From Asterias rubens (lineage: Eukaryota): 64,000 nt of DNA. Shown here piece after piece: positions 6,658-53,259 of the stretch. The DNA lies in assembly GCF_902459465.1 (NCBI RefSeq), contig NC_047071.1, positions 5,456,001 through 5,520,000 on the forward strand. Reading direction: 5' to 3'. The translations under genes and the position numbers were made by a program. Below the pieces are notes generated by a model, which saw only the letters and a list, made by a program, of their open reading frames with translations, searched no databases and had not been told where the DNA came from. The first letter of the stretch is position 1, and each line of letters begins with the position of its first letter.

Positions 6658-7254
6658 CTACTTCTTTGGCTTGGTGGTCTTCTTCGGCTTTGCTGCTTTG
6701 GTGGCCTTCTTTGCCTTTGGCTTTGGACTCTTTGCGGCTTTGCTGGGCTTGGCGACTTTCTTTGATGGCTTGGCTGCTGTTTTCTTGGCTGCAACTTTCT
6801 TGGTGGGTGTCTTCTTGACGATTTTCTTTGGAGTCTTCTTCTTGGTTATCTTGGTTTTCTTGGCCTTCTCCTTCTTGGCTGCGGCTTTCTCTGCTTTCTT
6901 GGCTTTCATCTCTGCTTTCTTTGCTTGATCCTTCTCTTTCTTGGCCTTGGCTCGTTCTTTGACCTTCTCCGCCTGTTCCTTGGCCTTGTCCTTTGCTGGG
7001 TCCAATTTGAATGAACCGGAAGCTCCCTTGCCCTTGGTCTGGATAAGAACTCCCTTCTGCACACCGGTATTGAGGGCTTTTCGGATGAAAACGGCCTGCC
7101 TGTCCATGTCGACTTGGAATGTGTCCTTGATGTACTTTCTGATGGCTTGACTGGACGAACCGTTTTTCTCCTTCAGTGCCACGATAGCGGCAACCACCAT
7201 CTTGATTGCTGGAGGGTGGGCCCGAACGGTTGCAGACTTTTTCACGGTAGCCAT
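6658..7254 (-). CDS. H1: Histone H1, copy 5
   Basis: Identical protein to copy 1. Confidence 0.97.
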
Positions 7255-8267
7255 GATGATAGAGAGAGATGATGCGAGGGAATCGTTTCGTAAGAAGCTT
7301 TACAGCGAGCAATACTGATGAGACCCACCGGACCGTCAGCCTTTTTCAAGGGTCACGGGTGGCTCTGAGCAGCCCCTGGGTCCATTCACGCTGCTCAATC
7401 AACCGGCGAGACTCGGCGGTTCGCGTGGAGCTGGAATTTACTCCAATATTAGTGTGTTTCATTTTTCTTCTGATTTGCAAAATTCTTGTTTAAAATAGCA
7501 TCGGACAATTTCCCCATAACTGTAGATGTGTTGGTCAAGTTCTAACCTTTCCATGCATACAATTTTCTTTTACGAGGTCTCAATATCTAAGCCTGAAACG
7601 ACCACTATGAAATGACATTGTTTCCGATAGTGAAATTTTATTCATTTTTTTGTCGCATATAATGTTACATCGATTTATGTAACATATGATTATTGTTTCA
7701 AATAATGATGATGATCTTAGCAAGTCAATTAATCCAATCACGCAATAGTTGTTGTAAAATTGTCTTGCGACAATTTCGAGAAACAAACTCGTTTTTGTTA
7801 TTTGGGCATTATTGGTGCTTAAGGCAGTGGAGTCGCATGCAAGTTGATACATTCTTACTATTTCCGCCCTTCTGTGTACCCCCCCCGTGTCTCTACTGCC
7901 CCCCTTCAGAAAACAAACAAACAAACTAACAAACACCGCATAGTTATGTAAATTGGTACGTTTGTTTACATCAAATTCATCGTGTTTCGCCATTTTGTTT
8001 TGTTGCATAATGCCCCCCTACATCACCGCTGCTTTTATGTAAACTTGTGAGTTTGTTTTTATTAGATCCATCGTTTTTCGCCATTTTGTTTCTGTAACAT
8101 AGTGTTTTTGATCAAACTAGTTACTTATTTATGTAATGTTTATGTATTTAATATTTTGGATGTATTTTTTTTATCGAAACAAATAAATTATCTGCCGATG
8201 TGATTATTTAATTTTTCAATTATTTTTCCTAGACAAATGCAGGTAATAGTCTCTTTTTGTAAGTTGT

Positions 8268-8283
8268 GGCTCTGAAAAGAGCC
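8268..8283 (-). terminator. Histone 3' stem-loop of deleted H1 copy 6
   Basis: GGCTCTTTTCAGAGCC retained. Confidence 0.9.
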
Positions 8284-8318
8284 GTTTGGTTTGGTTGATT
8301 GTCCCGGGTGGGAACTGA

Positions 8319-8834
8319 CTACTTCTTTGGCTTGGTGGTCTTCTTCGGCTTTGCTGCTTTGGTGGCCTTCTTTGCCTTTGGCTTTGGACTCTTTGCGGCT
8401 TTGCTGGGCTTGGCGACTTTCTTTGATGGCTTGGCTGCTGTTTTCTTGGCTGCAACTTTCTTGGTGGGTGTCTTCTTGACGATTTTCTTTGGAGTTTTCT
8501 TCTTGGTTATCTTGGTTCTCTTGGCCTTCTCCTTCTTGGCTGCGGCTTTCTCTGCTTTCTTGGCTTTCATCTCTGCTTTCTTTGCTTGATCCTTCTCTTT
8601 CTTGGCCTTGGCTCGTTCTTTGACCTTCTCCGCCTGTTCCTTGGCCTTGTCCTTTGCTGGGTCCAATTTGAATGAACCGGAAGCTCCCTTGCCCTTGGTC
8701 TGGATAAGAACTCCCTTCTGCACACCGGTATTGAGGGCTTTTCGGATGAAAACGGCCTGCCTGTCCATGTCGACTTGGAATGTGTCCTTGATGTACTTTC
8801 TGATGGCTTGACTGGACGAACCGTTTTTCTCCTT
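8319..8834 (-). pseudogene. H1: 5'-deleted histone H1 (copy 6), lacking promoter and codons 1-27
   Basis: H1 sequence ...ttttctcctt joins directly to spacer gtttcgccattttg at 8834/8835, a ~809-bp deletion versus the normal unit. Also carries a K>R change. Confidence 0.92.
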
Positions 8835-9124
8835 GTTTCGCCATTTTGTTTTGTTGCATAATGCCCCCCCCCCCCTACATCACCGCTGCTTTTATGTAAC
8901 CTTGTGGGTTTGTTTTTATTAGATCCATCGTTTTTCGCCATTTTGTTTCTGTTACATAGTGTTTTTGATCAAACTAGTTACTTATTTATGTAATGTTTAT
9001 GTATTTAATATTTTGGATGTATTTTTTTTATCGAAACAAATAAATTATCTGCCGATGTGATTATTTAATTTTTCAATTATTTTTCCTAGACAAATGCAGG
9101 TGATAGTCTCTTTTTGTAAGTTGT

Positions 9125-35943: not shown

Positions 35944-38430
35944 TTAACTATTTTGATCTTATAATATCACCCTCCAATTTATTAATTTATTGGTTTGTTT
36001 GCTGCAAGTTTTTGTTTGTATAATAAACTCCATGAGCAGTTTGATGAACACTAATTGGTAGTTACTCATAATACTTGTTAACTAACTGGCATAAAAACTT
36101 ACTTGGTAAAAAGCAACAGAGAATTTTAACAGAGAATTTTTGATAGTATAAAACAGTTGTATATTAAACATTGTGAGAATTGGTTTTGAGACCTCAGATT
36201 TAAATCTTTAGATCCCGAAATCATGCACTTTAAAGCATACAAATGCATATTACAAGGGTGTTTTTTCTTACATTATTATCTCGCTACTTCGACGACCATT
36301 TGAGTCAAAATTATCACAGGTTTGTTATTTTGTGCTGCATTTGTTGGTATATACAGGTGAGAAGCCTGGTCTTTTACAATAATTAAAGTGTATTCAAAAG
36401 TTGATATATTATTATTGTTGTCTTAAACAGCAACAAATTATGCTTCAAGTAAGAAATGAGTACATAAATCAACACTCTGGTTGGAACAATAAAAAAAAAT
36501 TATTTTAATACCAAGTCATCAAAAAGTGTAATGCGACTAACCCGTAATGCGACAGACCATGCAATGTAATGCGACTGACCAAATCTTTTTTTCAAGAGGA
36601 GGATGCAAAGAGGTCAGCAAGGCTGGATTATCTACAGTAACTTATGACTTACTAGAAGACAATTATCTAAGAGATCTGGGGCTCTCTGCATAATATATGC
36701 CACTCATGCCCACCCCACCATGCATTTTTCGCAAAGCAAATGCTAAAAACTGTAAGTTGTACATGTGCTATTCCAATCTGTACTTCTAGTTTCATCATTT
36801 GTAAGCGTCTTTATGTTATAATATGAAATAAAATATAAAAAAAAAACAATATGGCTGAGATTTCTTTGGGGTAAAAAAGGTGAAGTAATGGCATTGAAAT
36901 TAACTACTCTCCACGCTGAAAAAGCAGAAATGATATGCTGACAAACTGAAAGTACAAGGATTATAAAGAGATCACAGACACGTCACCTGCCAAAAGGGCA
37001 AACAAAAGCAAACAGCTGATGTCCTCTTGCCTCCATTTACAAAGTGCTGCATTACAAATCAGGGTAGCAATGTAAGGGTAGCAATGCATGGTCGAGTCAG
37101 TGGTGTGTGGTGTAATTATGCAGTGAAATGTATCCAGGTAAAGTGAAAGGGATGGGTGCTCTAAAGTCAAAGAGATGGTTGTCATGTGATCATGTTTTGT
37201 GTGTGTTATAATTATATACTTTTTACGAACCATGTAACATACAAATTGTTTGTTGCATTGAAGAACCTGTGATAACAAACAACTCGGGCCTTTTTGAATT
37301 TACGGGCCACTTTTAATAGTAACCACAATTTTGAAGTTTCAGGGTACATTATGTTAAAATAAATGCATGTAAGTCACTGTAAATCTGCAAATTAATTTTT
37401 GTTCAATTACATACAGCAAGATGTTCAATGCAATACTCTGAATATAACGTTGATCAGTCAAATGTGAAATCCTAATACTTCTGAAAAATGTAAAATTTGT
37501 AAACTTTTACATCGAAAAACACATTTCAGCCGTGTTTCTATGATTTTTAAGAGACAATAATGTGATTTTAGTAGTCAAAACCAGTAAAATCAATTTATTT
37601 AACTTGTTGATAATGAATGAATCCAATATTGACAAATAACTCCAGTTGGGAACTGTGATGCGGCTGACCATGGTTTTACCATGTAGGCCTATACATAAAA
37701 TTATAAGTTGCTGCTTCCTGTAATATATTCATTAGAGTTGTGTATTACATACTTGAAGTAAACCCCTTGCATTTTTCTTTAGTTTGAGGAAACTTTTGGA
37801 TTGTGACAAGTGTAATTTTACCATGTCATTTTTGTGTATTGCGACTGACCGCTTTTACAACGTTATAACATCCAGAGCACAAAGCCCACAACGTTTCTAG
37901 TATCATCAATTTAGAGAGCCTTGGGTTTCAAGTACAAATCAATCTATAAACTTAATGGAAAGAATATCTTACCAAGAACTACTTACTAGCACAAAGATCA
38001 AGAAATTGCACAGAAAAGTGTAATCTGACTATAATTTTAAACGTGATGACCATTGGATTAGTATTTTGGACACAATGGTTGAGTTTCAAATAAAGGCCTA
38101 CTGGCATCTTAATTATTTTGAGAATTGAGTGCATAGATTGAAGACTGATGAATAGTTTTGCCTGACAATTGAGAAATCAAAGAATACAAAAAGGTAATTT
38201 CTGTATTAAAAAAAGGAAAAGACAAAAAAAGACCCTCTATGTCTACAGTTGCAAAGCTCGCTGGTTCTAATCACACTCACCAGTGATTTGCCTGTGATTT
38301 TGAAGAAAACAATAAGACATCGGTGTAAGGGTAAAGGCAAACATTTTTTTTTTAAAGCCATTATACACTTTCGGTAAACAGTATTGTCCAAGTCCCACAC
38401 TTCGTGTATCACAACTTATACATAAAATAA

Positions 38431-38555
38431 TGAATAGGGTAGGTGGCCTTAGCTTTCGATCCAAACCGGACCTTCTTCAGAGGCATAACACAAGTACAAA
38501 CAAATACATATCCATTTTTAGAAAAAGAGAGGGGAAAGGGATTAAGGGAAGGATC
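38431..38555 (-). mobile_element. Short Penelope-like insertion with 10-bp target duplication
   Basis: CATAAAATAA at 38421-30 and 38556-65; the family copy at ~45680 lacks the insert; carries a hammerhead motif. Confidence 0.7.
38446..38484 (-). ncRNA. Minimal type-I hammerhead ribozyme
   Basis: GCCT CTGAAGA A GGTCC-GGTTT-GGATC GAAA GC T A AGGC: stem I 4 bp, stem II 5 bp, palindromic AGCT stem III. Confidence 0.72.
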
Positions 38556-39344
38556 CATAAAATAACAAACCTGTGAAAATTTAGGCTCAATCGGTCATCG
38601 GAGTCGGGAGAAAATAACAGGAAAACTCACTCTTGTTTCCGCGCGTTTCGCCGTGTCATGACTAGTGTTTACTATAAATCCGTAATTCTCGCTATCGAGA
38701 ATTTATATTGTTTTAACGTTTTCTCAAAAAGTAAAGTCTTTCACCAATACCTTCTGTAAACCCTGTGAATTATTTGTAAATCTGTGAACTTTTTTTTTCT
38801 GTACCGAAAGTGTATAATGGCTTTAAATCCAAAGATTAAAAATTAACATCTATTAAAAATGCCATCGTTGAAATCGAAATTCATTTATGAAAGATAAAAC
38901 ATTAATCAACAGATTTTTACTGGGGTCTCTACCTAATTTTTGGGGACTAAAACAATAGATTTATGAAGGCAAAAACTAAGGTGCATGATGTGATCAAAGC
39001 CTACAAACGTAAGCATGTCAACCCATATCATACAAGTTAAACTCGGGCAGTACAAGCTTGATGACCAAACCATACCAAAGGCACTCACTTACTGTTTGTT
39101 TAGACATGGAGGTAAACATGTCAATGATTTTTGTGTGCAGCTTCAATTACCCACAACAATGTTTCTGTATAGGCACCATACATACAGTCTGGTATGAATC
39201 ATGCAACTTAAAAGAGTTTACTTTATGTCTCGACTGGTCATTTTGTCAGTAGACTACATGAAGCCAATTCAACAACACTGTGGAACAAACAAACACACAT
39301 TTTTTGTGGTAACAAACACACATTTTTACTAGATAGTGTCTTAT

Positions 39345-39624: not shown

Positions 39625-40100
39625 ATAACCACATGGATACATTTCTATTGATCATTATATCACCTGAATCATTTCTATTCAAATCTGCGCCCATAGATTT
39701 AACCTTTCCTTATGTTGTATTACTTGTCAATTTTGTTTAGCTGAATCATCCGTCGTTATTTTGTGTCGTGCGTTCTATCACTGGACTGGAAAATGTTGGT
39801 GATACAAGATGTGTCGAATGAGCCACAGAACGGCAATCACAGTGTACATGTATGCATTGCCTGCACGGCGGTGCTCGGGAAGATCGGGGCTCCGTGGTGA
39901 CAGGATTTAAACAATTTATAACACGTCACATTTTGCTTGCGATATCGGTTGGTATAATCACTAGGCTGTCGCAAATTGTTAAACAAGTAATGCCAGTGTC
40001 ATAAGAATATTTTTTATAATTCGAAGTGTTTATCTAATAACAAAATACAAATAACAAATAAAAAAGGTATACTGTTCCCCAAAAAACAAAGCAGTCTGCT

Positions 40101-40507
40101 TTAAAGGTTGTGGACACTCAGATTAATAATTGCTCAAAATAATTATTGGCACAAAACCTTACTTGGTAACGAGTATAAATGGGGAGAGGTTGATAGTTCA
40201 AAACATTGTGAGAAACGGCTCCCTCTAAAGTGACATAGTTTTTCGTGGATGAAGTAATTTCCAACAAATTTGATTTAGAGACCTCAGATTTAGAATTTGA
40301 GGTCTCGAAATCAAGCATCTGAGAGCACACAATTTTCGTGTGACAAGGGTGTTTTTTTCTTTTATAGTTATCTCGCAACTTTGACGACCAATTGAGGACC
40401 AATTGAGCTCAAAATTTGACAGGTTTGGTATTTTATGCATTATGTTAAGATACACCAAGTGAGAAGACTGGTCTTTGAAAATTGCCAATAGTGTCAAATG
40501 TCTTTAA
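40101..40507 (-). mobile_element. TTAA element family 2
   Basis: TTAA|AGGTTGTGGACAC ... GTGTCAAATGTCT|TTAA with the shared core reversed. Confidence 0.8.
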
Positions 40508-41042
40508 ACAATAAGTTCAAATTATGTTCTGCAATAAAGATCTGCAATATTAAAAATTAAATGCCATCTCCAAAGGCAAACTCTTTTGTTTTTATTTATT
40601 TTGGGCGACACATTAGCAGGGCCGAATTTCAACAGCTGCTTGACCAGCACCAAAAAAGCTATATAGGCCTACACAAAAACAATTAGGCTAACCAAAATAA
40701 GATTAACAGCCAACCGGCAAAGTACAATTTCACATTGTACTTATTTTGATAATAAGCATAAATATTGTTTAATAACCAGCTTTTTTAACTTGTGACTTGT
40801 GCTTTCAACGTAAATAAAATTTGCTCGAGCAAAACAACACTCACACCCGAGCGAGCCATCAGTCTTTTTCTTCAGAAAAATATAAGGAAACTAACAAAAG
40901 TGAGAGAGGGCGCGATGGAATAAGAAAGAAATGAAAAAAAATATTTTAAAAAGCATGTAAAACTGTGCAATGATCAATGACCTGAATCCCATGTGAAGTA
41001 GAGAGTTTGTCATTCATAGATAACCCATCCCCGCCCGGCGTT

Positions 41043-41415
41043 TTAAAGATGATATGTCAGATTTTTGGCCCCAACAAATTAATTTTGTTGGAGTGAATGG
41101 TAGTTCAAAGAGTATCACCCGCTCTAACGAAAAACAGTTTAACTTTTACTTTTAATGGTCAGGAACCATGACAAAAATTTGAAACGTTTCTTATAAAACA
41201 CATAAGAATTGGTCACGTGATAAATTGTCGAGATCCCGACAAAAACTAATTTTGAGCACTTTATTTCACTGCTCCTGATAATTGGCGGACTTTTTTTTCG
41301 AGCAATGGCTTAAATGAAAGCTTGTAACTTTCTCGACCCCCATCAAAATACCTATTGAATTTTAAATCAAAATTTTTGGGTCAAATCAGCATAAAATCTG
41401 ACATAGCATCTCTAA
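41043..41415. mobile_element. TTAA element, further family (AGATG.TATGTCAGATTTT TIRs)
   Basis: TTAA|AGATGATATGTCAGATTTT ... AAAATCTGACATAGCATCT|CTAA. Confidence 0.6.
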
Positions 41416-41746
41416 TCTGAACAATAATATTGCCATCACACTGCACTTCAACAGTTGTGACTTTGCAATCAAGCACATACCGTAATTATTTCGAATCCCT
41501 AACTTTACGCTGTGAGTGAATTTCTGGGGGCACTTGGCTTCAAATCACTATGATACTATATCAAAGTATAGACCGTGCCCGTGGTCGGTAAGTGGTGCTG
41601 TAAGTTGTTAAACCCGCGCTTTCAATTTGTAATACATTTTGGAATGCTTGCAATTTGTAATACATTTGGAATAAGCTGGCAATGATAATAACCGCATTGT
41701 CAAAAAAAAAATGTGCCAACTGGAACTGTGTCGTATCAAAACAACG

Positions 41747-42116
41747 TTAAAGGCAGTGTACACTATTGGTGGTAATCTCTCAAAACAATTATCAGCATAA
41801 AACCTTTTTTGGTGACGAGTAAATGGGGAGAGGTTGATAGTATAAAACATTGTGAGAAACGGCTCCCTCTGAAGTGACGTAGTTTTCGAGAAGGAAGTAA
41901 TTTTCCACGAATTTGATTTCGAGACCTCAGAACTTGAGGTATCGAATTCAACCATCTATTAACGCACACAACTTCGTGAGACAAGGGTGTTTTTTTCTTT
42001 CATTATTACCTCGGAAGTTCGAGGACCAATTGAGCTTAAATTTTCACAGGTTTGTTTATGTATAATGTTAAAATACACCAACTGTGACAATTACCGATAG
42101 TGTCCATTGCCTTTAA
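41747..42116 (-). mobile_element. TTAA element family 2
   Basis: TTAA|AGGCAGTGTACAC ... GTGTCCATTGCCT|TTAA. Confidence 0.85.
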
Positions 42117-44792
42117 ACAACTTCAGTAATATTATTATTTAGCCGCTGACATTGTTTTCCATCAATCATTTTTTTAAATTAATAATAGGCCCTAATGGCA
42201 TTTTGTAACTATATATATTCTGAAATTATATGAATCAGGAATAATATCATCATTTCTTTACAAACGAGCGAGTAACACAAAACACTTCAAATTTGAATGA
42301 TTTATGATACACTTACCGACACAGCTAGCCCGCATGATGTGATACAATATCGGTACATGATGAGGATTCACACCAAAACAATAATAATGATCATAATATT
42401 TATGCAAAAACCAACTACACTCTTCAATATTTTGAAAATTATACCCATACGTACGTACGTGGCACACACGTTTGAATTTCCGCATATGTTGCGCGTTTGC
42501 GTTTACCAACGACGTATATTAATTTTTTGTTTGAAGTGCGCGTGCTTATACGCCATAATGCGTTTTAAATGAAGCGCGCATAAAATTATAATACGTCCGG
42601 GTGCGTCCCACGCGAGAGCGCGCTGATTTTCGCGCAGTAATGCCCCATGGATGCTCATTCAGTGATCATCAGTACCGTGGAGTGGGTGAAACCGTCAACC
42701 ACTCACTCGGGTTAATTTAGAGAAAGACAAAATAATTATGCGCCTCATTTCAAACTCGACAATCACGTTGGATGAGTGAGTGAGTATGCCATTGCCGCCG
42801 TCATAGGGGCATATGAGGGCCGAACGCATTTAAGTATATAATATAATCAATCGCCATCCTCCAAAAAGGTAATAAGTTTTTTATAAGGACTACATTCCCC
42901 GAACTTCAAAGAACAGGAAAACAATTGCCATGTTTACGACCGTGGCTATTTTGATGTCAGACAAACAACAACAACATTGCGGGTCGAATGGCATGCCAGG
43001 GCATGTTGCGGCGCGGTGGAAGCATGGAAGCGAACAGCTTATGAAAGGAAGTTTTGGGGTATAGGGAAAATACATTGATCCAAACTACATTTCATTTGAT
43101 ATGGGGTCATTATTGAGGATTTTTTATTATTTACATTTATCAGTCTGAGTAAGTGCCCACCCGACTGCAGAGAAAACCACCACAAGTGACGATCTATAAA
43201 AAAGGGGACAATGTCAGACAGATATTTTTTTATTTTCATGTAGTGCAGAAACAACACCGGGCGATAGGAACTGTCCGTTGCCTGGATATGCCTCTTGGGA
43301 AAAGGGCACATCATGGCTTTGAAATATTTAGGTACATTTGTGGTTTATAAGACCCAAAGCCAGTCATTTACACACACAAAAAAAAAAACCACAAAAAACG
43401 TTGCCGTTCCGTTTTGTTTTCAAGTTCGCCTGGTTCTACTTTTGTAAAACTACAAAAAAGCGTTTGCATTTCCTGAGGCTTTATTTATACCAAACGAAAG
43501 CGAACACTTCTAATGATAGGCTTTCTCGTTTGAGCAAAAAAACAATGGCGGTAGTATATTGACAATGCACAGAGCACTGCGGTTTCAAAACTAGTTCCCG
43601 CCGGATCGCCATTGCTCAAACACCAAGGTACTTTGTGAGCATCCAGGGTCCTTGAATTATGTTAACAAAGGGGGTGTCCATTTTGAAGTATAGGGGTGTT
43701 GTGGGGAACAAATTTAATTTATAAAACTTATAAATCATGATAACGAAAAGAAAAAAAAGGTATTTCCATGGTAATTCCTCCAAAGAGATCACTTATTAAT
43801 CACAATTGTTTCAAACCTTCTTTCTATAATTGGTATACCACTGGTAATAAAACATTCGCTGGTGTTAAGCCGGTCCCTGCATACAGCCTGCAAATCGCCC
43901 ACCCAGCCCATTTTTTCAGCCTGCAAAAACGCACGTGCGTTTTGTACACACAGTAGATATGATGCAGGCACGAGTCGAGTCGAGTAGTCAGATGCCATTC
44001 TTGGATTGCTCGCCGTAAGTTAGTGCGCGTATGCGGTGTTGCCCTTAAAAGTACGCGGATGTCGGGGGCTAGAAGAACGAAAGAACAACCTTCTATACTT
44101 CCACTTCATGTTGTAGATGGTAAGTCAACATTTATATACATAAAAATATCGCTGACAATCAATTAAAATAAATTTTGGTTTATTGTTTTACAACAACGAG
44201 AACAAAACAACTGAGTGTAATGGCATACACGTCGTCATACGAAAAAACGGGAGCGACCCCATTGCTGGCTGCGTGCTGGTGGGAACTCCCGAGTCGATGA
44301 GCGGGGGAAGACCGCGACACGAAACCTGCCGGGTTTCCGGTGCAGCAACCAACGCTGGGTTTGCAATACTAATTTGCCGTGCATGCTTATTTTCATGGCA
44401 GTTTGTTTAATTCATTGGTTGCAACTTCATCAATGGAAGACGATGTTGTTTGTACTCTGTTCATAATATTAATAGCGTGCGGTCCGGCAACTCAAAATAA
44501 TTGTTAGCATAAATCCTTACTTGGTAATGAGTAATGGGGAGAGGTTTATAGTATACAACTTTGTGAGAAACGGCTCCCTCTGAAGTGACGTAGTTTACGT
44601 ACGAGAAAGAAGTAATTTTCCACGAATTTGATTGAGAGACCACCAGGTCAGTCTTTTTCCATTGGCATTTTTTCATTAAGATTGACAGCTTGGTAAGAAC
44701 ATTCACAATGAATAAATTCAGATACGAAGAAACAAATAGTTTTATGTCAAGGGCTACTTTGGTCTCAAGTTTTCAACTATTAATATTAAACG

Positions 44793-45295
44793 TATAATAG
44801 ATGTTAAATTTGCATTGGGGATAAAGAATATTAATTTTGGTTTTTACCTATACACCGATGTGTGTTAGCACTGTATACTCAGTACTTTCCCGAGTCCTGT
44901 GAAAAAAATATCACAGGCATGTTACTCGGGTGGGATTCGAACCCACGACCCTTGCAATTCTAGAGCAGTGTCTTACCAACTAGACTACCGAGGTTGCCCG
45001 GCAGCTAGAGGCAGGTCGAATCCTATGTTTTGGCAGCGGGTACCGCAACGATATAATAGATGTTAAATTTGCATCGGGGATAAAGAATATTAATTTTGGT
45101 TTTTACCCATACACCGATGTGTGTTAGCACTGTATACTCAGTACTTTCCCCCGAGTCCTGTGAAAAAATATCACAGGCATGTTACTCTGGTGGGATTCGA
45201 ACCCACGACCCTTGCAATTCTAGAGCAGTGTCTTACCAACTAGACTACCGAGGTTGCCCGGCAGCTAGAGGCAGTTCGGGAAAGTACTGAGTGTA
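44793..45295. repeat. ~260-bp tandem duplication, each unit with a tRNA-like module; closed by a 17-bp inverted repeat
   Basis: Units start at 44793 and 45052; tRNA-like segments on the minus strand at 44925-44992 and 45185-45252; ACTCAGTACTTTCCCGA is inverted at ~45276-45292. Confidence 0.85.
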
Positions 45296-45613
45296 TGTCT
45301 AAAAAATAGATAAAGTTGTTTGGGGGAAAAATATTTGTAATAAAATATTATTTGTTCCGACGAAATTGGAGCATTAACATAATTCTACAAATTAAAATGT
45401 GTTTTCGTCAATACCAATACCCTAATGTTTTGGCCAGTGTAATAGGAAACACACACATTATATATTATTTTGTTTGGCCTAAGTAAAATTAAAATTGGCA
45501 CAATGGGAACAATGGGATTGCTGGACAAATAAATTCAATGTCATTATCTGGATGGATAGCAGTTTGTGGTAAACTTGTGAAGAATTGAGTTTCTTAGGTG
45601 TTGAATACATGAT

Positions 45614-45964
45614 TTAAAGCCATTGGACACTTTTGGTAAACAGTAAATGTCCAAGGCCCACACTTTGTGTATCACAACTTATATATAAATTAACAAACCT
45701 GTGAAAATTTAGGCTCAATCGCTCATCTGAATCGGCAGAAAATAATGTGAAAACCCACCCTTGTTTCCGCACGTTTCGCCGTGTCATGACATGTGTTTAA
45801 AATAAATATGTAATTCTCGATATCAAGAATTGATTGTTTTAATGTTTTCTCAAAAAGGGAAGCATTTCAATTAAATTTCAAGAGAAGTCTTTCACCGTTA
45901 CCATCTGTAAACCCTGTAAGTTATTTGTAAACCTGTGAACTTTTTATTTTGTTTCTGTACCAAA
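45614..45964 (+). mobile_element. TTAA element family 3 lacking the last ~14 bp of its right TIR
   Basis: TTAA|AGCCATTGGACACTTTTGGTA start; ends CTGTACCAAA, then unrelated sequence. Confidence 0.8.
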
Positions 45965-46013
45965 CGGTTTGTTTGATTTTGTGATAACTTTTGCAGTAGT
46001 TAAGAAACTAACC

Positions 46014-46394
46014 ATGGATGAAGAGTGGCTGGTTAAAATCGCTGCAGCAATTGCAAAGAAAGTCGGACATGACTCGTACACAGGATGTGATATTTGGCAG
46101 GGCTATGCAAAGAGGAGAATGGGAAGGGCAAGGGCGTATGGATATGGCATCATGAATGTTAAATTTCCACACCGAGATTCACGCACAATGATGCGTGTAC
46201 ATCGGTTGGTGTACATTGTACATACTAGAAGTTTAATATCCCGGCAGTATGATGTTAGCCACCTATGCCACAATTCATTGTGCGTGAATTTCCACCATCT
46301 CTCCCTGGAGCCACATTCCGTCAACAATTCCCGTAAAACGTGCAGGCGGCGCAAGCATTGCATGGGCCATGGAGATTATAAAAACTGCCTGTAA
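46014..46394 (+). CDS. His-Cys-box / His-Me finger endonuclease-like protein (126 aa)
   Basis: ACCATGG start context; GCDIWQG, YGYG, VHRL, SHLCHNSLCVN.HHL..E..SVN.SR..C.....C.GH.....C, matching the I-PpoI-type catalytic and zinc-binding pattern. Confidence 0.8.
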   Translation: MDEEWLVKIAAAIAKKVGHDSYTGCDIWQGYAKRRMGRARAYGYGIMNVKFPHRDSRTMMRVHRLVYIVHTRSLISRQYDVSHLCHNSLCVNFHHLSLEPHSVNNSRKTCRRRKHCMGHGDYKNCL

Positions 46395-46591
46395 ACTTGT
46401 TGTGAGTTACATGTAATTAGTTTTCCAAAACCTAACCAAATCCAAGTCCCAACCCATTCCCAAACCCTGACCTAAACCCAAACCCTACCCTAACCCTACA
46501 AGGTACATGTAGCTCCAGTCATACCCATTTCTAATCATAACCCAAATAATTATGTTCATATCAAGTGAGTTTTGAATACATTCTAATAATA

Positions 46592-47576
46592 TTAAAGGAA
46601 CAAGTTGCCTTGGATCGGACGAGTTGGTCTATAAAAAGCGTTTGTAACTGTTTTTTATCAAATGCATATGGTTGGAAAGATGTTTTTAAAGTAGAATACA
46701 ATGATCCACACAAGTTTGCCTCGCAATTGCGTGGTTTTCCTTTTACTGTGCGAACTAACACAGTTGGCCATTTATTGGGGTCAAGTTTTTGTCCGTGTTA
46801 GTCGACGAGGTAAAAGGAAAACCGTGCAGTTTCGAGGACTGTTGTGTGGATCATTGTATTCTACTTTTACAACATCTTTCTACACATCTTTCTATCCACA
46901 CAAGTATCACTCAAAATTGCACTGTTTTCCTTTAACGTCGTTAAAGGAACACGTTGCCTTAGATCGGACGAGTGAGTTGGTCTATGAAAAAGCGTTTGTA
47001 ACCGTTTGTTATGAAAAGCATATGGTTAGAAAGATTTTTTTAAAGTAGAATACAATGATCCACACAAACATGCCTCGAAATTGCACGGTTTTCCTTTTAT
47101 TTTGCGAAATAACACGGTCGCCCATTTATGGGAGTCAAAAATTTGACTCCCATAAATGGCCGACCGTGTTTGTCGACGAGGTAAAAGGAAAACCGTGCAA
47201 TTTCGAGGCATGTTTGTGTGGATCATTGTATTCTACTTTTACAACATCTTTCTACCCATATGCATTTTATAACAAACGGTTACAAACACTTTTCAAAGAC
47301 CAACTCGACCGATCCAAGGCAACGTGTTCCTTTAACTAAAGCGTTCGGCCATTTTATGGAGTCAAAATTTTGACTCCACAAAATGGCCGACTGTGTTTCT
47401 TTGAGACGTAACAGGAAAGCCATGCAGTTTAGAGGCATGTTTACTTGTGGATCATTCTATTCTACTTTTAAATTATCTATCTAACCAATTGCATTTCATA
47501 ACACACCAATCCAAGTGCCTTTCAAAGTCTAACTCGACCGATATAAGGCGAGATATAAGGCAACGTATTCCTTTAA
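46592..47576. mobile_element. Nested cluster of three family-1 foldback MITEs
   Basis: Copy A 46592-~46880 (truncated); copy C 46941-47335 complete with TTAA duplication, inserted into older copy B (~46885-46940 plus 47336-47576). Confidence 0.8.
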
Positions 47577-47941
47577 CTCCTGCACAACAATCGCTGCAAA
47601 AACAGCCCTGTCATGTCAGAATTTGCATTGCATTCGCAGCAAGTTTGAACTTGGCTCAAGGATCTAGTAGCCCAGTTTGATAAGAATGATACAAGTTGTT
47701 CTTGCAAGTTTTTTCTCACTTTGAAGTGTGGTTTAGCTTTACATTATGCTGGTCTCGTTCCAGTTGTTTAAAAACATTTTTTTATGCAAGTCGCCAGACA
47801 TACAAGGTCTGAAGACCATTTCAAGGTGTGGGCTACCAATAATTTTTTTTCAAGAGCCCGCCCTTTTTTTGGCACCTACTCCGAGGGCTGAAACAGGCTT
47901 GGGTATCAGTAGAGCAGAAAGCACTACCTCCCAAATTTTAC

Positions 47942-48040
47942 GTAGCAAGTGTCACGACCGGGATTCGAACCCACACTCTGCTGATCAAACACCAGAGCTT
48001 GATTCCGGTACCCTTGACCGCCAGGCCATGACACGCCACA
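47942..48040 (-). mobile_element. tRNA-derived SINE, 5' part
   Basis: Minus strand GTGTCATGGCC.GGCGGT ... GTGGGTTCGAATCCCGGTCGTGACACTTG. Confidence 0.75.
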
Positions 48041-49064
48041 CTTACATCATTGTTTTTGTGTAATGCTTTTTTAAAGATTATTCATGTTTTTGTTTCCATT
48101 GAAACAGGGGCACTTGAAGCGGCAGTTAACAGGCAGCCCCAGCTTCTCACTTCAGTACTCCAGAGTTTGCAAATTTGTTGGGAGGGACAAGGTGGATGGC
48201 ATTGTTTTCTATTCGTAAGTGGATTTTTTGAATGTTCATGCATATTGTAGTCTAAAATTTCAAACTTATGCCAACTTGTTTCTAAGGTATGTAGCTTGAA
48301 GACCCAACCTCCTGTGCTACAATTGCAAAGGACACAAGAGGCATAATGAAAGTTGTGGGAACTGTCCAAACTCTTGCGTATCATGCTGAAACTGCAGGTG
48401 GCGGGTCACATGTAGAACCGCTGCCCTAAATCAAACGGAGCCTGAGCCAGAAAAAAACCTTTCCAACTCACAAGCATCCAGCAAGAAGAACAGTGAAAAA
48501 GAAAGTGTGAAATGACCTTATGGGGAGCTAAAAAAAGTATGAACAGACAGCAAAGCTGAGGACAGGGCGATCGTACAGTCCACAGTGTCAACTAGAAATT
48601 GGTCGGGGCCCCAGCTAGAGGAGCCAGAAGAGAACACTGACCAGGCCGCACACAGCAGCCTTCAAGGCCCCGGCAACAGCGTAGAAAAATAGAAGAGAAC
48701 CGCCGAAGACGGCCATTGGCACCGAGCTTACATAAAAGCACCAAACCCAATCGAGGCCCCAAGGGTCACCAACCAAGACTGACCTGACTCGAGACGCTGG
48801 AGAGAGCATTCTGAAATCGCTGGTAAGGGACCAGGGGAGGGTGTGAGTAAGAGGAGTTCCATGGGGGCTCTGCAATGTCCGACGTCTCTCACAAGCGGCG
48901 AAGAGAAGAGAATTGTCCTCATCCTCCTGGACATGGCCAAAGGGTAAATAGAACAAGAAAGGAAGAAGAAAAGGCACTCAGCTGTTGGCTGTGTTGCAGG
49001 ATTAAGTTGCAGGATTTATTATGCGTTTTGGTTTGACCTTGTTGTCCATTTAAGGGTGCAGCGT

Positions 49065-49900
49065 GTGTGGTGGCAGTTGTTTTACCACGTTGCTATGGAG
49101 ATGGACAACTTGGTCATGCGCTGAAAAATGCAAAATGTTTGTGAAGTTGTCTCTGGCCACTTTTGTACATACAAAGGTGAGCAGGAGATTTTTTGTGGCA
49201 TTCGTTAATGTCGTATTCCGCCTTTTGGGACGGTTGCCTTGGACATACCTGGACGTGTGCCACGTTATTTTGGCGTTTCCTAATGCCCGAGCTGTGTGTT
49301 TGGTTGTGGCCGTACAGCCCCAAGGCGCAAAATAAGAACTGTTCTGTCGAACTTCAGTAGCCCTCTCTTATGCTACTGAAGTAAGCTGGGCATTGTAGCA
49401 AAGAGCCATCTATGGGCTTTGCAACCCCTTAAGTCAGGGTTATTTGCTCTTTATTTTAAGTCTGTTGGTTTGTTGCGTCGGTTTGGTTTCGGCCCTGTCG
49501 TCCATCTCTGGGTGTAGCGTGTTCTGTGGCGATGGTTTGACCACTGTTACTGTGGCGTACATTGCCATGGAGATGGACAACAAGGTCGTGCGCCGTAAGC
49601 TGCGCGACTATGGTGAATTCGTCTCTGGCCACTTTTGTACCCATAAAGGTGAGCCCTAGGTCTTCAACGGAATCATTATAGAAAGCGTTTACAGCGTAAT
49701 ATTCCGACGGTTCTCCGCATCGGGGACCAAAACGCCTGGGTCTCGTATCTTGGACAGACCCAGACATTTGCCCGATGCGTGGAATCGGGCTACCATGTTC
49801 CTTCCCCCTCTCGCGGAGGGCTAGGGTGATTACCATTGAAGACATGGTGGCTGCAATGCAGGGTATCACGTTAAACAAACAGTCGCCAACGGCGATGGAA
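49065..49900 (+). pseudogene. Two decayed copies of an L1/Tx1-type ORF1 fragment
   Basis: VTVAYIAMEMDNKVVRRKLRDYGEFVSG...NGI and, after a frameshift, LRIGDQNAWVSYLGQ...RC.ESGYH (zinc-knuckle-like). GGAGATGGACAAC..GTCTCTGGCCACTTTTGTAC is repeated ~470 bp apart. Confidence 0.45.
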
Positions 49901-50224
49901 AAATGAAAGCGCTTTCGCGGTATTGGTGTGCACTTGCGCCGCGTGTAATCGCCCCAGTGCTCTTGCTTAAGAACGCGTAAGAACAGTCTGCTCTTTGACA
50001 CTGCACCTGAGTTCTACAAGTCTGTTTTGCAGAGTTGTCGTTCAAGTCGTAATCTTGTTGCTTACTTTGCATCTGTTCTTTTAAGAATAATCTGAAAATG
50101 CTGTTCATTGGGCAGTAAGTTTACTTCATCATAAATAGTCCCTAGTTCCAGTGCACCCTTAGCAATCCGATTCAGTGGCCAACATCTCATGGATTATGCT
50201 TGCTCGGATTTATCCTAACATAAC

Positions 50225-52020
50225 ATGAGTGAGGTCGCTCAGGCGTTACCTGCCCATTGTGCCGTGTGCTCGAAATCAATCGACAAGATTTCGGGCCTAC
50301 GCCGGCACATGGGTAAGATGCAATCAGAATATAGGCCTGCACATTCCACCGAGTCTGCATTGCTGAAAGTCAAAAATGACATCATGGAACTTGTTTCTAG
50401 GCGCAAAGGTGTGTTTTTGGCCCTGTTAGACCTCAGTGCGGCATTTGACACCGTTAACCACCGCATCTTGCTAAACAGGCTCGCGGATGAAATGGGATTG
50501 GAGGGTAATGTGCTCAAATGGATTGGGTCCTACCTTTCTGGAAGAACAACCAGTGTATGTATTGACGGCTCACTTTCTCAACATCTTGACTTGAAATATG
50601 GCATACCACAAGGATCGATAGTGGGCCCCCAACAGTTCAACATCTACACCACTCCAATTGGCAACATCCTGCGTAAGTACAACCTTCAGTTTCACATCTA
50701 CGCAGATGATATACAAGTGTATTCTTCTTTCGACCCCGGCAACCACAATTCCATGATATCTGCACTCTCACAGATGTCGACATGCATTGATGAGATCATG
50801 TCTTGGATGATTGTCAACAGGCTCAAGCTCAACGAGGAGAAGACCGAGTTCCTCGTGGTAATCTCTGATCACCTTAAGCACCTCCTGCCTGCAGTGACTC
50901 TCTGTATCGGTACCAAGATAATCCAGCCCTCTGAGAGTGTGCGCAATCTCGGTGTTGTGTTTGACACTTCCTTGAGTATGAATGCTCAAGTAACATCCCT
51001 GTGCAAAGGTCTCAACTACCAGATGCGCAATATCTCTAGAATCAGAAGATTCCTCGATAAGGACACCTGTTATCTTGTTGTCCGTGCTCTGATTCATACC
51101 AGGCTTGACTATGGTAATGCCTTGCTGTTTGGGTCCAACTCAACAGACATACAGCGACTCCAACGGCTACAAAACTGGGCTGCTAAACTTGTCTGTCGTG
51201 CCCCAAAGCATGACCACGCCACATCATACCTACAAGATCTTCACTGGCTGCCGATTAGGGAGAGGATAACCTTCAAGATCTTGGTTTATGTGTATAAATG
51301 CCTCAACAACACAGCTCCTGGCTATTTATCCTCTTGCCTGTCTCTCCATCGGCCTTGGGCGCTCAAGTCTACGCTCAGCATCCGACACTACTTGCTTCAT
51401 GGAACCTAACTCAATCAAGCTTCTTAAGTCGGCCTCAAGTCGCACATTCTCACATTTTGCTCCACACACCTGGAGTGCACTCTCCCCCTCAATCAGGAAA
51501 TCCGACTCTCTTCGAACATTTAAGAAGTGTATCAAACATTCTCTATACTCCTATCTAATGCGCTGCGTTCTTGACGTAGTGGCGCTATATAAATGCCCTA
51601 TATGTATGTATGTATGTATGCATCGCCACACAGATCATGAATCTTCAAGCAGTGCTGAGCTGATGGAGACTGTCGACCAGATCTTCAAGTACCCTCTTTC
51701 TGATGCCTGGTCCTGTAATGTCTGTAAAGACAATTTCTTCAATCAACAAACTCTGAATGGGTAGGATGCATCTCCACTCTGCTGAACCATCAAGCAGTGC
51801 TGAGCTAATGGAGACTGTCGACCAGATCTTCAAGTACCCACTCTCTTATGCCTGGTCCTGTGTTGTCTGTAAAGACAATTTCTTCAATCAACGAACTCTG
51901 AAAAGGCATCAGAAACGTTCCCATCGGGCAGTCTCCATCAGTTACATTTACCAGTGCCGTGCCTGTCCGCAGGAGTTTGACAACGCGAGGAGAGCTGCAG
52001 CACACTACCAGCGTCATAAG
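50225..52020 (+). pseudogene. Multi-C2H2 zinc-finger ORF remnant, split by an L2 insertion (possibly the N-terminus of an RLE-clade retrotransposon)
   Basis: CAVC-x12-H-MGKM|H is rejoined across the insertion; downstream CVVC-x12-H-x4-H and CRAC-x12-H-x3-H; ~145-bp tandem duplication at ~51620-51900. Confidence 0.6.
50323..51617 (+). mobile_element. 5'-truncated L2/CR1-group LINE (RT domain, one frameshift, (TATG)n tail)
   Basis: QSEYRPAHSTESAL, LLDLSAAFDTV, GIPQGSIVGP, YADD; extra T at ~51355; tail GCGCTATATAAATG..(TATG)n; ATGCA at 50318-22 and 51618-22. Confidence 0.9.
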
Positions 52021-53259
52021 AAAGCAGCCTCCTCGGCGTGTTCATCAGTGTGTGCCGTCCAGCCTCCTGCCGACCCTCGAGTGCTGCCTCTAGCTCCACA
52101 CACACCACCGTCTCCACCGCCTCCAGCCCGGCCACTGTTCTTCAGTCCACCACCTCTTCTTGCACGGTCACCAACTCCACCACCACCATCACCAGTTCTA
52201 CAAGCCACGAACCCAGTTTACAGCGCCTGGTGTGCATGTTAATGAGGATGCCGAGGCAGCCCAGGCACATCCCACGGCCCAATCTGCAGTGTGTTATCGA
52301 TTTGTTGAGTCACAGACAATATTTTAGAATAAGTATGTTGTTGCTGGTGAAGAAGGGGGCTCGTCTCTCGTGGGCAGTGTGGTGAGGTCAATCATAATCA
52401 AGTATGGGAAGTTTTAATTTTTGATTGTTTAAAAAAAATTGTTTAAATGATTATTGAAACAATAAACCTTTTTAAAAACTGAATGTTCTTCTCCGATTAA
52501 TATCGGAAAAGTCTTACTCTAGCAGACGATGTGTAGTCTAGTATGGTGGCAGGGGTGTATCATTGGGGGTAGCATCTTGCAGTTTGGGGAGGGGTGGATC
52601 TGTGTACTGTATGGCCACACAGCATTTGAAATCTCTAATTCAAAGCCTTGGAGCTCAGGAATGTCTTAGAATAGTTTTCTTATGTCTCCCATGTTTCCCG
52701 ATATAACATTCATAAATTTTGACCACATTTTCTGCATTTTCCCACACTCCCCACAGCTGTGAACTCAAGAAGTGAAGATCCGCCTTTGAGCTGAGGTTGT
52801 AATGCCAGTCTGCAGACCATGGAGAGTTCATCCACACAGCTTGCATCTGTGAGTATTTATTGCACATTTTGTGTCTTTGTCTGTTGAGAGCATGTGTTAA
52901 CCTCTTTTATGGGTTAACCATGAGTACAACATGCACACACAATCCTACATGTACATACATTAAACACTTTGTCAGCTGTTACTAAATTCCATTTAAGAAA
53001 CTAAATAATTAAATGAGACAAAAAACACAATTGCCTCCGTTGCCTCCGTGAAGTATCAGGCCTGCTTTAGCGACTTGATAATAATCCCTCTCTACTACAT
53101 GTAGCTGTTCATCCACCCATAACTACTGTGACAGGAGAAAGACACTGACAATGAAATCAAGTGAGTTACATGTATGTTTCTAGATGTGATGGTGACAAAT
53201 ACATGTACATGTAGTTGTTACTGTATAGGCCTACCAAAGGAATCAATGAAACTATCAAT

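Follow-up and report, generated by a model that had tools for sequence, protein, structure and literature searches.

The open reading frame (ORF) described here encodes a small nuclease of 126 amino acids (aa) and lies in a 64,000-nucleotide stretch of the genome of the sea star Asterias rubens (NC_047071.1, positions 5,456,001 to 5,520,000), referred to below as the window, whose own numbering is used throughout. We consider it very probable that this ORF is the nuclease gene of a KolobokP transposon, which is now reduced to an internal fragment of ~630 bp lacking both the direct repeats and the body of the transposase. The window gene is an ordinary transposon remnant, and the most likely reading at this locus is that of a silent relic, young enough to have escaped damage so far.

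KolobokP transposons were described by Kojima and Bao (Mob DNA 2022;13:24; PMC9587614). They have the form LTDR-INT-LTDR, in which an internal region (INT) is bracketed by long terminal direct repeats (LTDRs) of ~450 or ~660 bp, each with terminal inverted repeats (TIRs) of its own, and their target-site duplications of 3-5 bp, TTAA-like in sequence, occur at the outer ends (PMC9587614). The elements code for a DDD/E transposase together with, on the opposite strand, a small I-PpoI-like His-Me nuclease, and they were reported from animals of seven phyla, among them the sea star Patiria miniata; the published nuclease alignment is characterized by the pattern DVSHLC.N..SLCV..HLSLEP..VN-NSRK (PMC9587614). 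The same authors proposed, speculatively, that the nuclease may cut the direct repeats internally, at their ends, or where TIRs abut, and that such cleavage may drive the formation of multimers (by induced unequal crossover) or the re-integration of circles (PMC9587614).

The first-pass annotation of the window, made from the sequence alone, had reported an intact 126-aa ORF with an ACCATGG start that retains the general-base His, the zinc ligands, and the metal-binding Asn of I-PpoI-type enzymes, and all of these points were borne out. The frame is open throughout, and its start lies in the context aaACCATGGat. The profile search which that annotation had proposed as a check gave a match to Pfam PF05551 (zf-His_Me_endon, zinc-binding loop region of homing endonuclease) at E 2.4e-12 and 47.6 bits, the cut-off being 27 bits; the Pfam scan also returned a weak match to HNH_3, and the NCBIfam scan of the protein gave no match. 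Among solved structures, I-PpoI is the sole sequence match to the nuclease (E 0.017). In the residue alignment, S82 and H83 of the nuclease correspond to S97 and H98 of I-PpoI, H98 being the general base, while H95 corresponds to H110, E99 to E114, and N104 to the metal ligand N119. The zinc ligands C85, C90, and C110 are equivalent to C100, C105, and C125 of I-PpoI, and a second zinc site is made up of C110-x5-C116-x2-H119-x5-C125. The protein has a His-Me finger fold with two structural zinc sites, and it carries the eight conserved His and Cys residues as well as the equivalents of S97, H98, H110, E114, and N119 that define a KolobokP nuclease.

His-Cys box homing endonucleases of the I-PpoI group are encoded in nuclear group I introns within ribosomal DNA, and they make site-specific double-strand cuts in a long semi-palindromic target, after which homing takes place. 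The window nuclease shares with them the general-base His, the metal-binding Asn, and both zinc sites; in contrast, its sequence identity to I-PpoI is only ~16%, it is shorter (126 aa vs. 163 aa), and it stands outside any group I intron or ribosomal DNA (rDNA), with transposons as its flanks. A predicted model of the window nuclease covers residues 3-140 of I-PpoI in the alignment and has nothing that corresponds to the C-terminal tail of that enzyme.

A word-indexed protein search returned 43 homologues of the nuclease, 81-182 aa long, the best of which are 68-71% identical to it, and nearly all of them are unnamed proteins from marine metagenomes and Logan assemblies. The exact window protein is absent from a collection of 15 billion proteins, and thus no gene model was found for it. 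The homologues align as a compact family in which start, end, and length are all conserved. The invariant columns (C25, S82, H83, C85, C90, L96, E99, P100, N104, C110, and C125) are all kept in the window protein, as are the near-invariant H95, C116, and H119. When scored against a profile of the other 41 homologues, it ranks 5th of 42, and it retains each of the 32 consensus residues, a consensus column being one in which at least 70% of the homologues agree. It resembles the KolobokP nucleases already described in its small size (~125-140 aa), its I-PpoI-like His-Cys box, and the motifs DVSHLCHN-SLCV-HLSLEP-VNNSRK-C.

A KolobokP origin had been suggested in the first-pass annotation, together with the advice to see whether homologues neighbour a Kolobok transposase or direct repeats, and both kinds of neighbour were found. 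Each of the 11 homologue loci whose flanks are long enough also carries a PF20700 transposase of Kolobok type (contigs L004 and L008, which stop too early to show this neighbourhood, lie outside the count), and in 10 of these it is convergent with and downstream of the nuclease. In eight loci (L001, L002, L003, L006, L007, L009, L010, and L011), a PF20700 ("Mutator-like transposase") gene encoding 560-690 aa follows directly in convergent orientation; in L012 and L013, the same convergent transposase is frameshifted; and in L005, the transposase of an adjoining unit lies upstream of the nuclease, the transposase of its own unit being internally deleted. Long terminal direct repeats turned up in each locus examined for them. 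Direct repeats bracket both genes in L001 (674 bp, 99.9% identity) and L002 (651 bp, 100% identity), each with its own short TIRs and RR..YY ends. In L004 and L005, a direct repeat of ~480 bp is indicated by paired TIRs, ~340-350 bp upstream of the ATG, and the repeat ends of these two loci (GGGTGCACC... type) resemble the published repeat of KolobokP-1_PaMi from Patiria. Additionally, the YNNPL motif of the published transposase alignment is present in the L003 transposase. In the relatives of the window gene, as in the described elements, the nuclease and the DDD/E transposase are convergent, with one gene downstream of the other, between repeats of ~450 or ~660 bp. The derivation from KolobokP is therefore supported by gene neighbourhood, repeat architecture, and the match to published alignments.

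Two of these loci are of interest in their own right. The marine metagenome contig L005 (1-4846) holds the transposase of unit 1, a direct repeat of ~478 bp, and the nuclease of unit 2, and looks like a KolobokP multimer. The internal deletion of the unit-2 transposase is apparent from the repetition of unit-1 sequence, since 4418-4684 matches 1-280 and 4683-4846 matches 2543-2706; unit 2 keeps its nuclease while its transposase is deleted, which means that nuclease-only derivatives exist. In L012, a large eukaryotic contig, a frameshifted KolobokP transposase pseudogene (7000-8864, minus strand) stands beside an open nuclease ORF, another case of the small nuclease frame outlasting its transposase.

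The KolobokP remnant in the window extends over about 45965-46591 and is made up of the leader, the complete nuclease ORF, a telomere-like array, and the final ~10 codons of the transposase (Table 1). The interval of about 45950-46585 is the only stretch free of the repeats common to the rest of the window. The window agrees with L003, L005, and L006 in the order of four features: the nuclease stop codon, the AAAC..GTGAGT motif, the telomere-like array, and the transposase stop. The transposase C-termini of these relatives read ..CRMFSKST-stop (L003), ..CKIFSK-stop (L005), and ..SRMSQK-stop (L006), and the DNA alignment agrees with the window remnant.

Table 1. Features at and around the nuclease ORF, in window coordinates.
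Feature	Position	Strand	State or basis
Family-3 copy: truncated ~350-bp Kolobok-like miniature inverted-repeat transposable element (MITE), TTAA flank, 5'-AG..CT-3' ends	45614-45964	+	shared repeats, end comparison
Leader, 49 nt: rest of the KolobokP upstream internal region (~340-350 bp in relatives)	45965-46013	+	
Nuclease ORF, 126 aa: His-Me finger (His-Cys box, I-PpoI-like), KolobokP type	46014-46394 (including stop)	+	intact
AAAC..TTGTGAGT motif, splice-donor-like (GTGAGT), just after the nuclease stop	46393-46407	+	DNA alignment
Degenerate telomere-like (CCCTAA)n array	46430-46499	+	within the gap separating the two convergent genes
Transposase end: last ~10 codons and stop (..IIRMYSKLT-stop), the only transposase remnant	46561-46591	-	cut by foldback insertion
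TTAA-flanked foldback transposon cluster, which ends the KolobokP fragment	46592-47578	.	shared repeats, loose read ends at 46592

Several small features of this region recur in the relatives. The AAAC..TTGTGAGT motif, 1-15 nt past the stop codon, is common to the window, L003, L005, and L006, whose proteins are only ~60-70% identical. The telomere-like array occupies the same place in these three closest relatives (L003 ~620-760, L005 4400-4540, and L006 895-1040), and a (TTAGGG)n array also stands in the published internal consensus of KolobokP-2_PaMi; the text of PMC9587614, by comparison, makes no mention of a telomere-like array between the two genes. Just before the recognisable transposase stop, a second degraded stretch resembling the transposase 3' end (..ATAATTATGTTC.., compare L006) was noticed at 46505-46560, and it may be a small local duplication.

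The window copy differs from the described elements in what it has lost. Beyond the terminal remnant, no transposase body was found in the 64-kb window, either by tblastn or with a 7-sequence profile run in six frames with filters off. The possibility that the transposase lies behind nested insertions was considered and rejected: tblastn with three transposases gave one weak match (52471-52758, E 4e-4), the profile gave only a score of 1.6 at 52633-52815, and both matches are taken as noise from a Pro/Ser-rich stretch. The same profile recovers the frameshifted L012 transposase, which indicates that the method works. On the right, the fragment is ended by a foldback terminus with TTAA at 46592-46595, and from 47579 onward, past the foldback cluster, the transposase is not resumed; the TTAA elements that had been noted after the ORF are these foldback elements. 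The direct repeats of the relatives are likewise missing from the window, where their TIR pattern has 0 matches and blastn gives none, and LTDRs of either size, ~450 or ~660 bp, are lacking in the window copy. The window thus holds a fragment and not an element, and both outer element ends are missing at the locus. Non-autonomous KolobokP forms, INT-only or LTDR-INT (PMC9587614; also L005), are similar in that they are pieces without a working transposase. However, at least one direct repeat, or else a set of clean excision footprints, is retained in those forms, whereas the borders of the window fragment are junctions with other transposons.

Public sequencing runs under three organism labels contain the stretch. 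Contigs of run X1 span 45987-46567 with 0 differences, and contigs of run X2 span 45916-46617 with 2 differences. In X2, contig depth at the locus resembles that of the unique flank (169.6 vs. 194.6), which indicates that the locus is single-copy. Under a different label (organism C, run X4), the same locus and MITE junction are present; over 642 bp this copy differs at 10 bases and has 30 additional letters. In three DNA runs, a several-fold increase in summed contig depth is confined to 46218-46325, where the ORF is most conserved (~100 bp), which suggests that other KolobokP nuclease copies, at least 90% alike over this interval, exist elsewhere in the genome.

The left neighbour of the fragment is the copy of family-3, to which the first-pass annotation had given weight as a Kolobok-type terminal element. 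It had described this copy as cut inside its right TIR about 50 bp before the ORF, and this description holds: the copy starts after TTAA at 45614-45617, has an intact left TIR at 45617-45638, and ends near 45964, ~13-17 nt short of its full right end, its right TIR being cut after ~10 nt, 49 nt before the ATG. An intact family-3 copy is located at 38351-38830, and a scan for the family-3 TIR gave 6 matches where 0 were expected. The weight placed on this neighbour was misplaced, as family-3 is an unrelated MITE and not the terminal repeat of the nuclease transposon. Its candidacy as a KolobokP terminal direct repeat was rejected on length (~350 bp vs. ~480 bp) and on its ends (AGCCATT.. vs. 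GGGTGCACC..). It also has no similarity to the direct repeats of close relatives, which stand ~340 bp from the ATG, as opposed to 49 nt here. The adjacency of family-3 and the nuclease is a rearrangement junction between two truncated elements.

It could also be supposed that the nuclease ORF was captured as a passenger and moved inside a non-autonomous Kolobok element bounded by family-3. The ORF does start 49 nt past a family-3 copy in the same orientation, and family-3 has Kolobok-like ends and a TTAA flank; however, this copy ends in its own right TIR and is therefore a nearly complete MITE by itself, and a family-3-bounded composite carrying the ORF was rejected since no opposing family-3 TIR lies downstream. 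Moreover, an insert of this kind is absent from the window's other family-3 copies, and the ORF stretch is single-copy whereas family-3 is extremely abundant. Taken together, these observations make a family-3 passenger highly improbable.

The first-pass annotation had called the gene free-standing, with no group I intron or rDNA apparent around it. The latter statement was confirmed with Rfam at gathering thresholds, as no group I intron or rRNA was detected in 40000-52000. The former is true of the locus but reflects how the element broke and does not characterize the gene family. A homing endonuclease that stands free and independent, with a genomic target of its own and spreading by homing, would account for the I-PpoI-like fold and active site, and the neighbouring histone arrays were named as a possible target of this kind, which is pure speculation. 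Against such an enzyme, every relative whose flanks are informative lies in a KolobokP unit, the ORF occurs in a single copy and gives no hint of having spread, and no intron, intein, or repeat-target context surrounds it. In addition, the remnant around the transposase stop codon shows that the gene arrived as part of a transposon. We regard homing on its own account as extremely improbable.

The only Rfam matches in 40000-52000 are two tRNA-like heads of short interspersed nuclear elements (SINEs). They belong to two tandem copies, 96.6% alike, of a 233-bp tRNA-derived SINE at 44789-45278, where the tRNA matches lie on the minus strand at 44922-44994 and 45182-45254. Farther to the right, a 394-aa ORF at 50225-51409 resembles, by eye, a reverse-transcriptase fragment of a non-long-terminal-repeat (non-LTR) retrotransposon.

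The question of whether the nuclease gene is a silent relic or is still maintained was approached through expression, divergence, and simulated decay. In RNA run X24, zero reads fall on 46002-46433. Thousands of X24 reads were found on the family-3 MITE (45614-45950) and on the foldback (46592-46900), equally on both strands; most of these flank reads run on into unlike sequence, which indicates that they come from many other repeat copies. The pairwise ratio of nonsynonymous to synonymous substitution rates (dN/dS) between the window gene and those of L003, L005, and L006 is 0.12-0.28, and the relatives show the same range among themselves. In a simulation of neutral decay, the probability that an open frame and the 32 consensus residues are all kept was 0.27 at 1% divergence, 0.07 at 2%, and 0.004 at 4%, from which it follows that the ORF has drifted neutrally by no more than about 2%. 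Both a recent relic and a frame still under constraint are consistent with this limit.

Several observations weigh against a young, silent relic. The ORF is fully intact and consensus-like though its transposon is wrecked, and the limit on drift implies that either the fragmentation was recent or the ORF is still constrained. Organism C shares the locus with differences, so the fragment is not brand new. Furthermore, expression was assessed in one RNA run only (X24, 18% read), and the upstream alignment to relatives is poor, which leaves the left limit of KolobokP-derived sequence approximate. We consider it unlikely that the ORF is kept by selection, as a domesticated host endonuclease or as a trans factor acting on remaining KolobokP repeats, with the telomere-like array and the GTGAGT motif as functional parts (e.g., a terminator, a target, or a splice signal).

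For a functional orphan nuclease retained as a domesticated host gene, or as a trans-acting helper or antagonist for other KolobokP copies, further signs can be cited besides the intact frame, the 32 consensus residues, the complete catalytic and zinc residues, and the limit of about 2% on neutral drift. The leader combines a good start context with an acceptor-like ttttgcag 18 nt upstream of the ATG, the extra depth over 46218-46325 points to further nuclease copies, which would offer possible substrates, and the locus and its left junction are common to organism C at ~1.6% divergence. This divergence between two organisms is, however, too small to show constraint, and dN/dS against distant relatives is for the most part a record of the period in which the gene served an active transposon. 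Of the native upstream region, only 49 nt is left, and the absence of reads in the RNA run, of the exact protein from the 15-billion-protein collection, and of any gene model also speaks against a working gene. Such a retained orphan nuclease seems to us distinctly unlikely, and we prefer the reading of the locus as a young, silent relic of a KolobokP element.

The relic could have arisen as follows. A complete KolobokP would have consisted of a direct repeat, an internal region with the DDD/E transposase and the convergent nuclease, and a second direct repeat. The left side, about 300 bp of the internal region and one direct repeat, was probably lost at the junction with the truncated unrelated MITE. 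The right side, with the transposase and the other direct repeat, appears to have been lost past the foldback insertion at 46592, presumably by insertion followed by deletion or ectopic recombination. If the nuclease were made, it would be expected to act as a zinc-stabilised dimeric DNA endonuclease that cleaves a semi-palindromic site, by analogy with I-PpoI, and by the same homology H83 would serve as the general base and N104 would hold the catalytic metal. Since no repeat or transposase is left at the locus, any nuclease activity would have to be exerted in trans.

The window gene is a member of the described KolobokP family in a species, Asterias rubens (order Forcipulatida), that is absent from the species list of PMC9587614. 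Beyond annotation, the importance of this finding is small: it extends the known hosts of KolobokP to a forcipulatid sea star and shows that the nuclease gene can persist, its reading frame undamaged, after the other parts of the element have gone. The telomere-like array between the convergent genes of sea-star-type KolobokP may interest transposon specialists. Should constraint or expression prove true, the window gene would become a first candidate for a KolobokP nuclease that is domesticated or acts in trans, and its product would be a convenient protein for probing the "induced unequal crossover" model.
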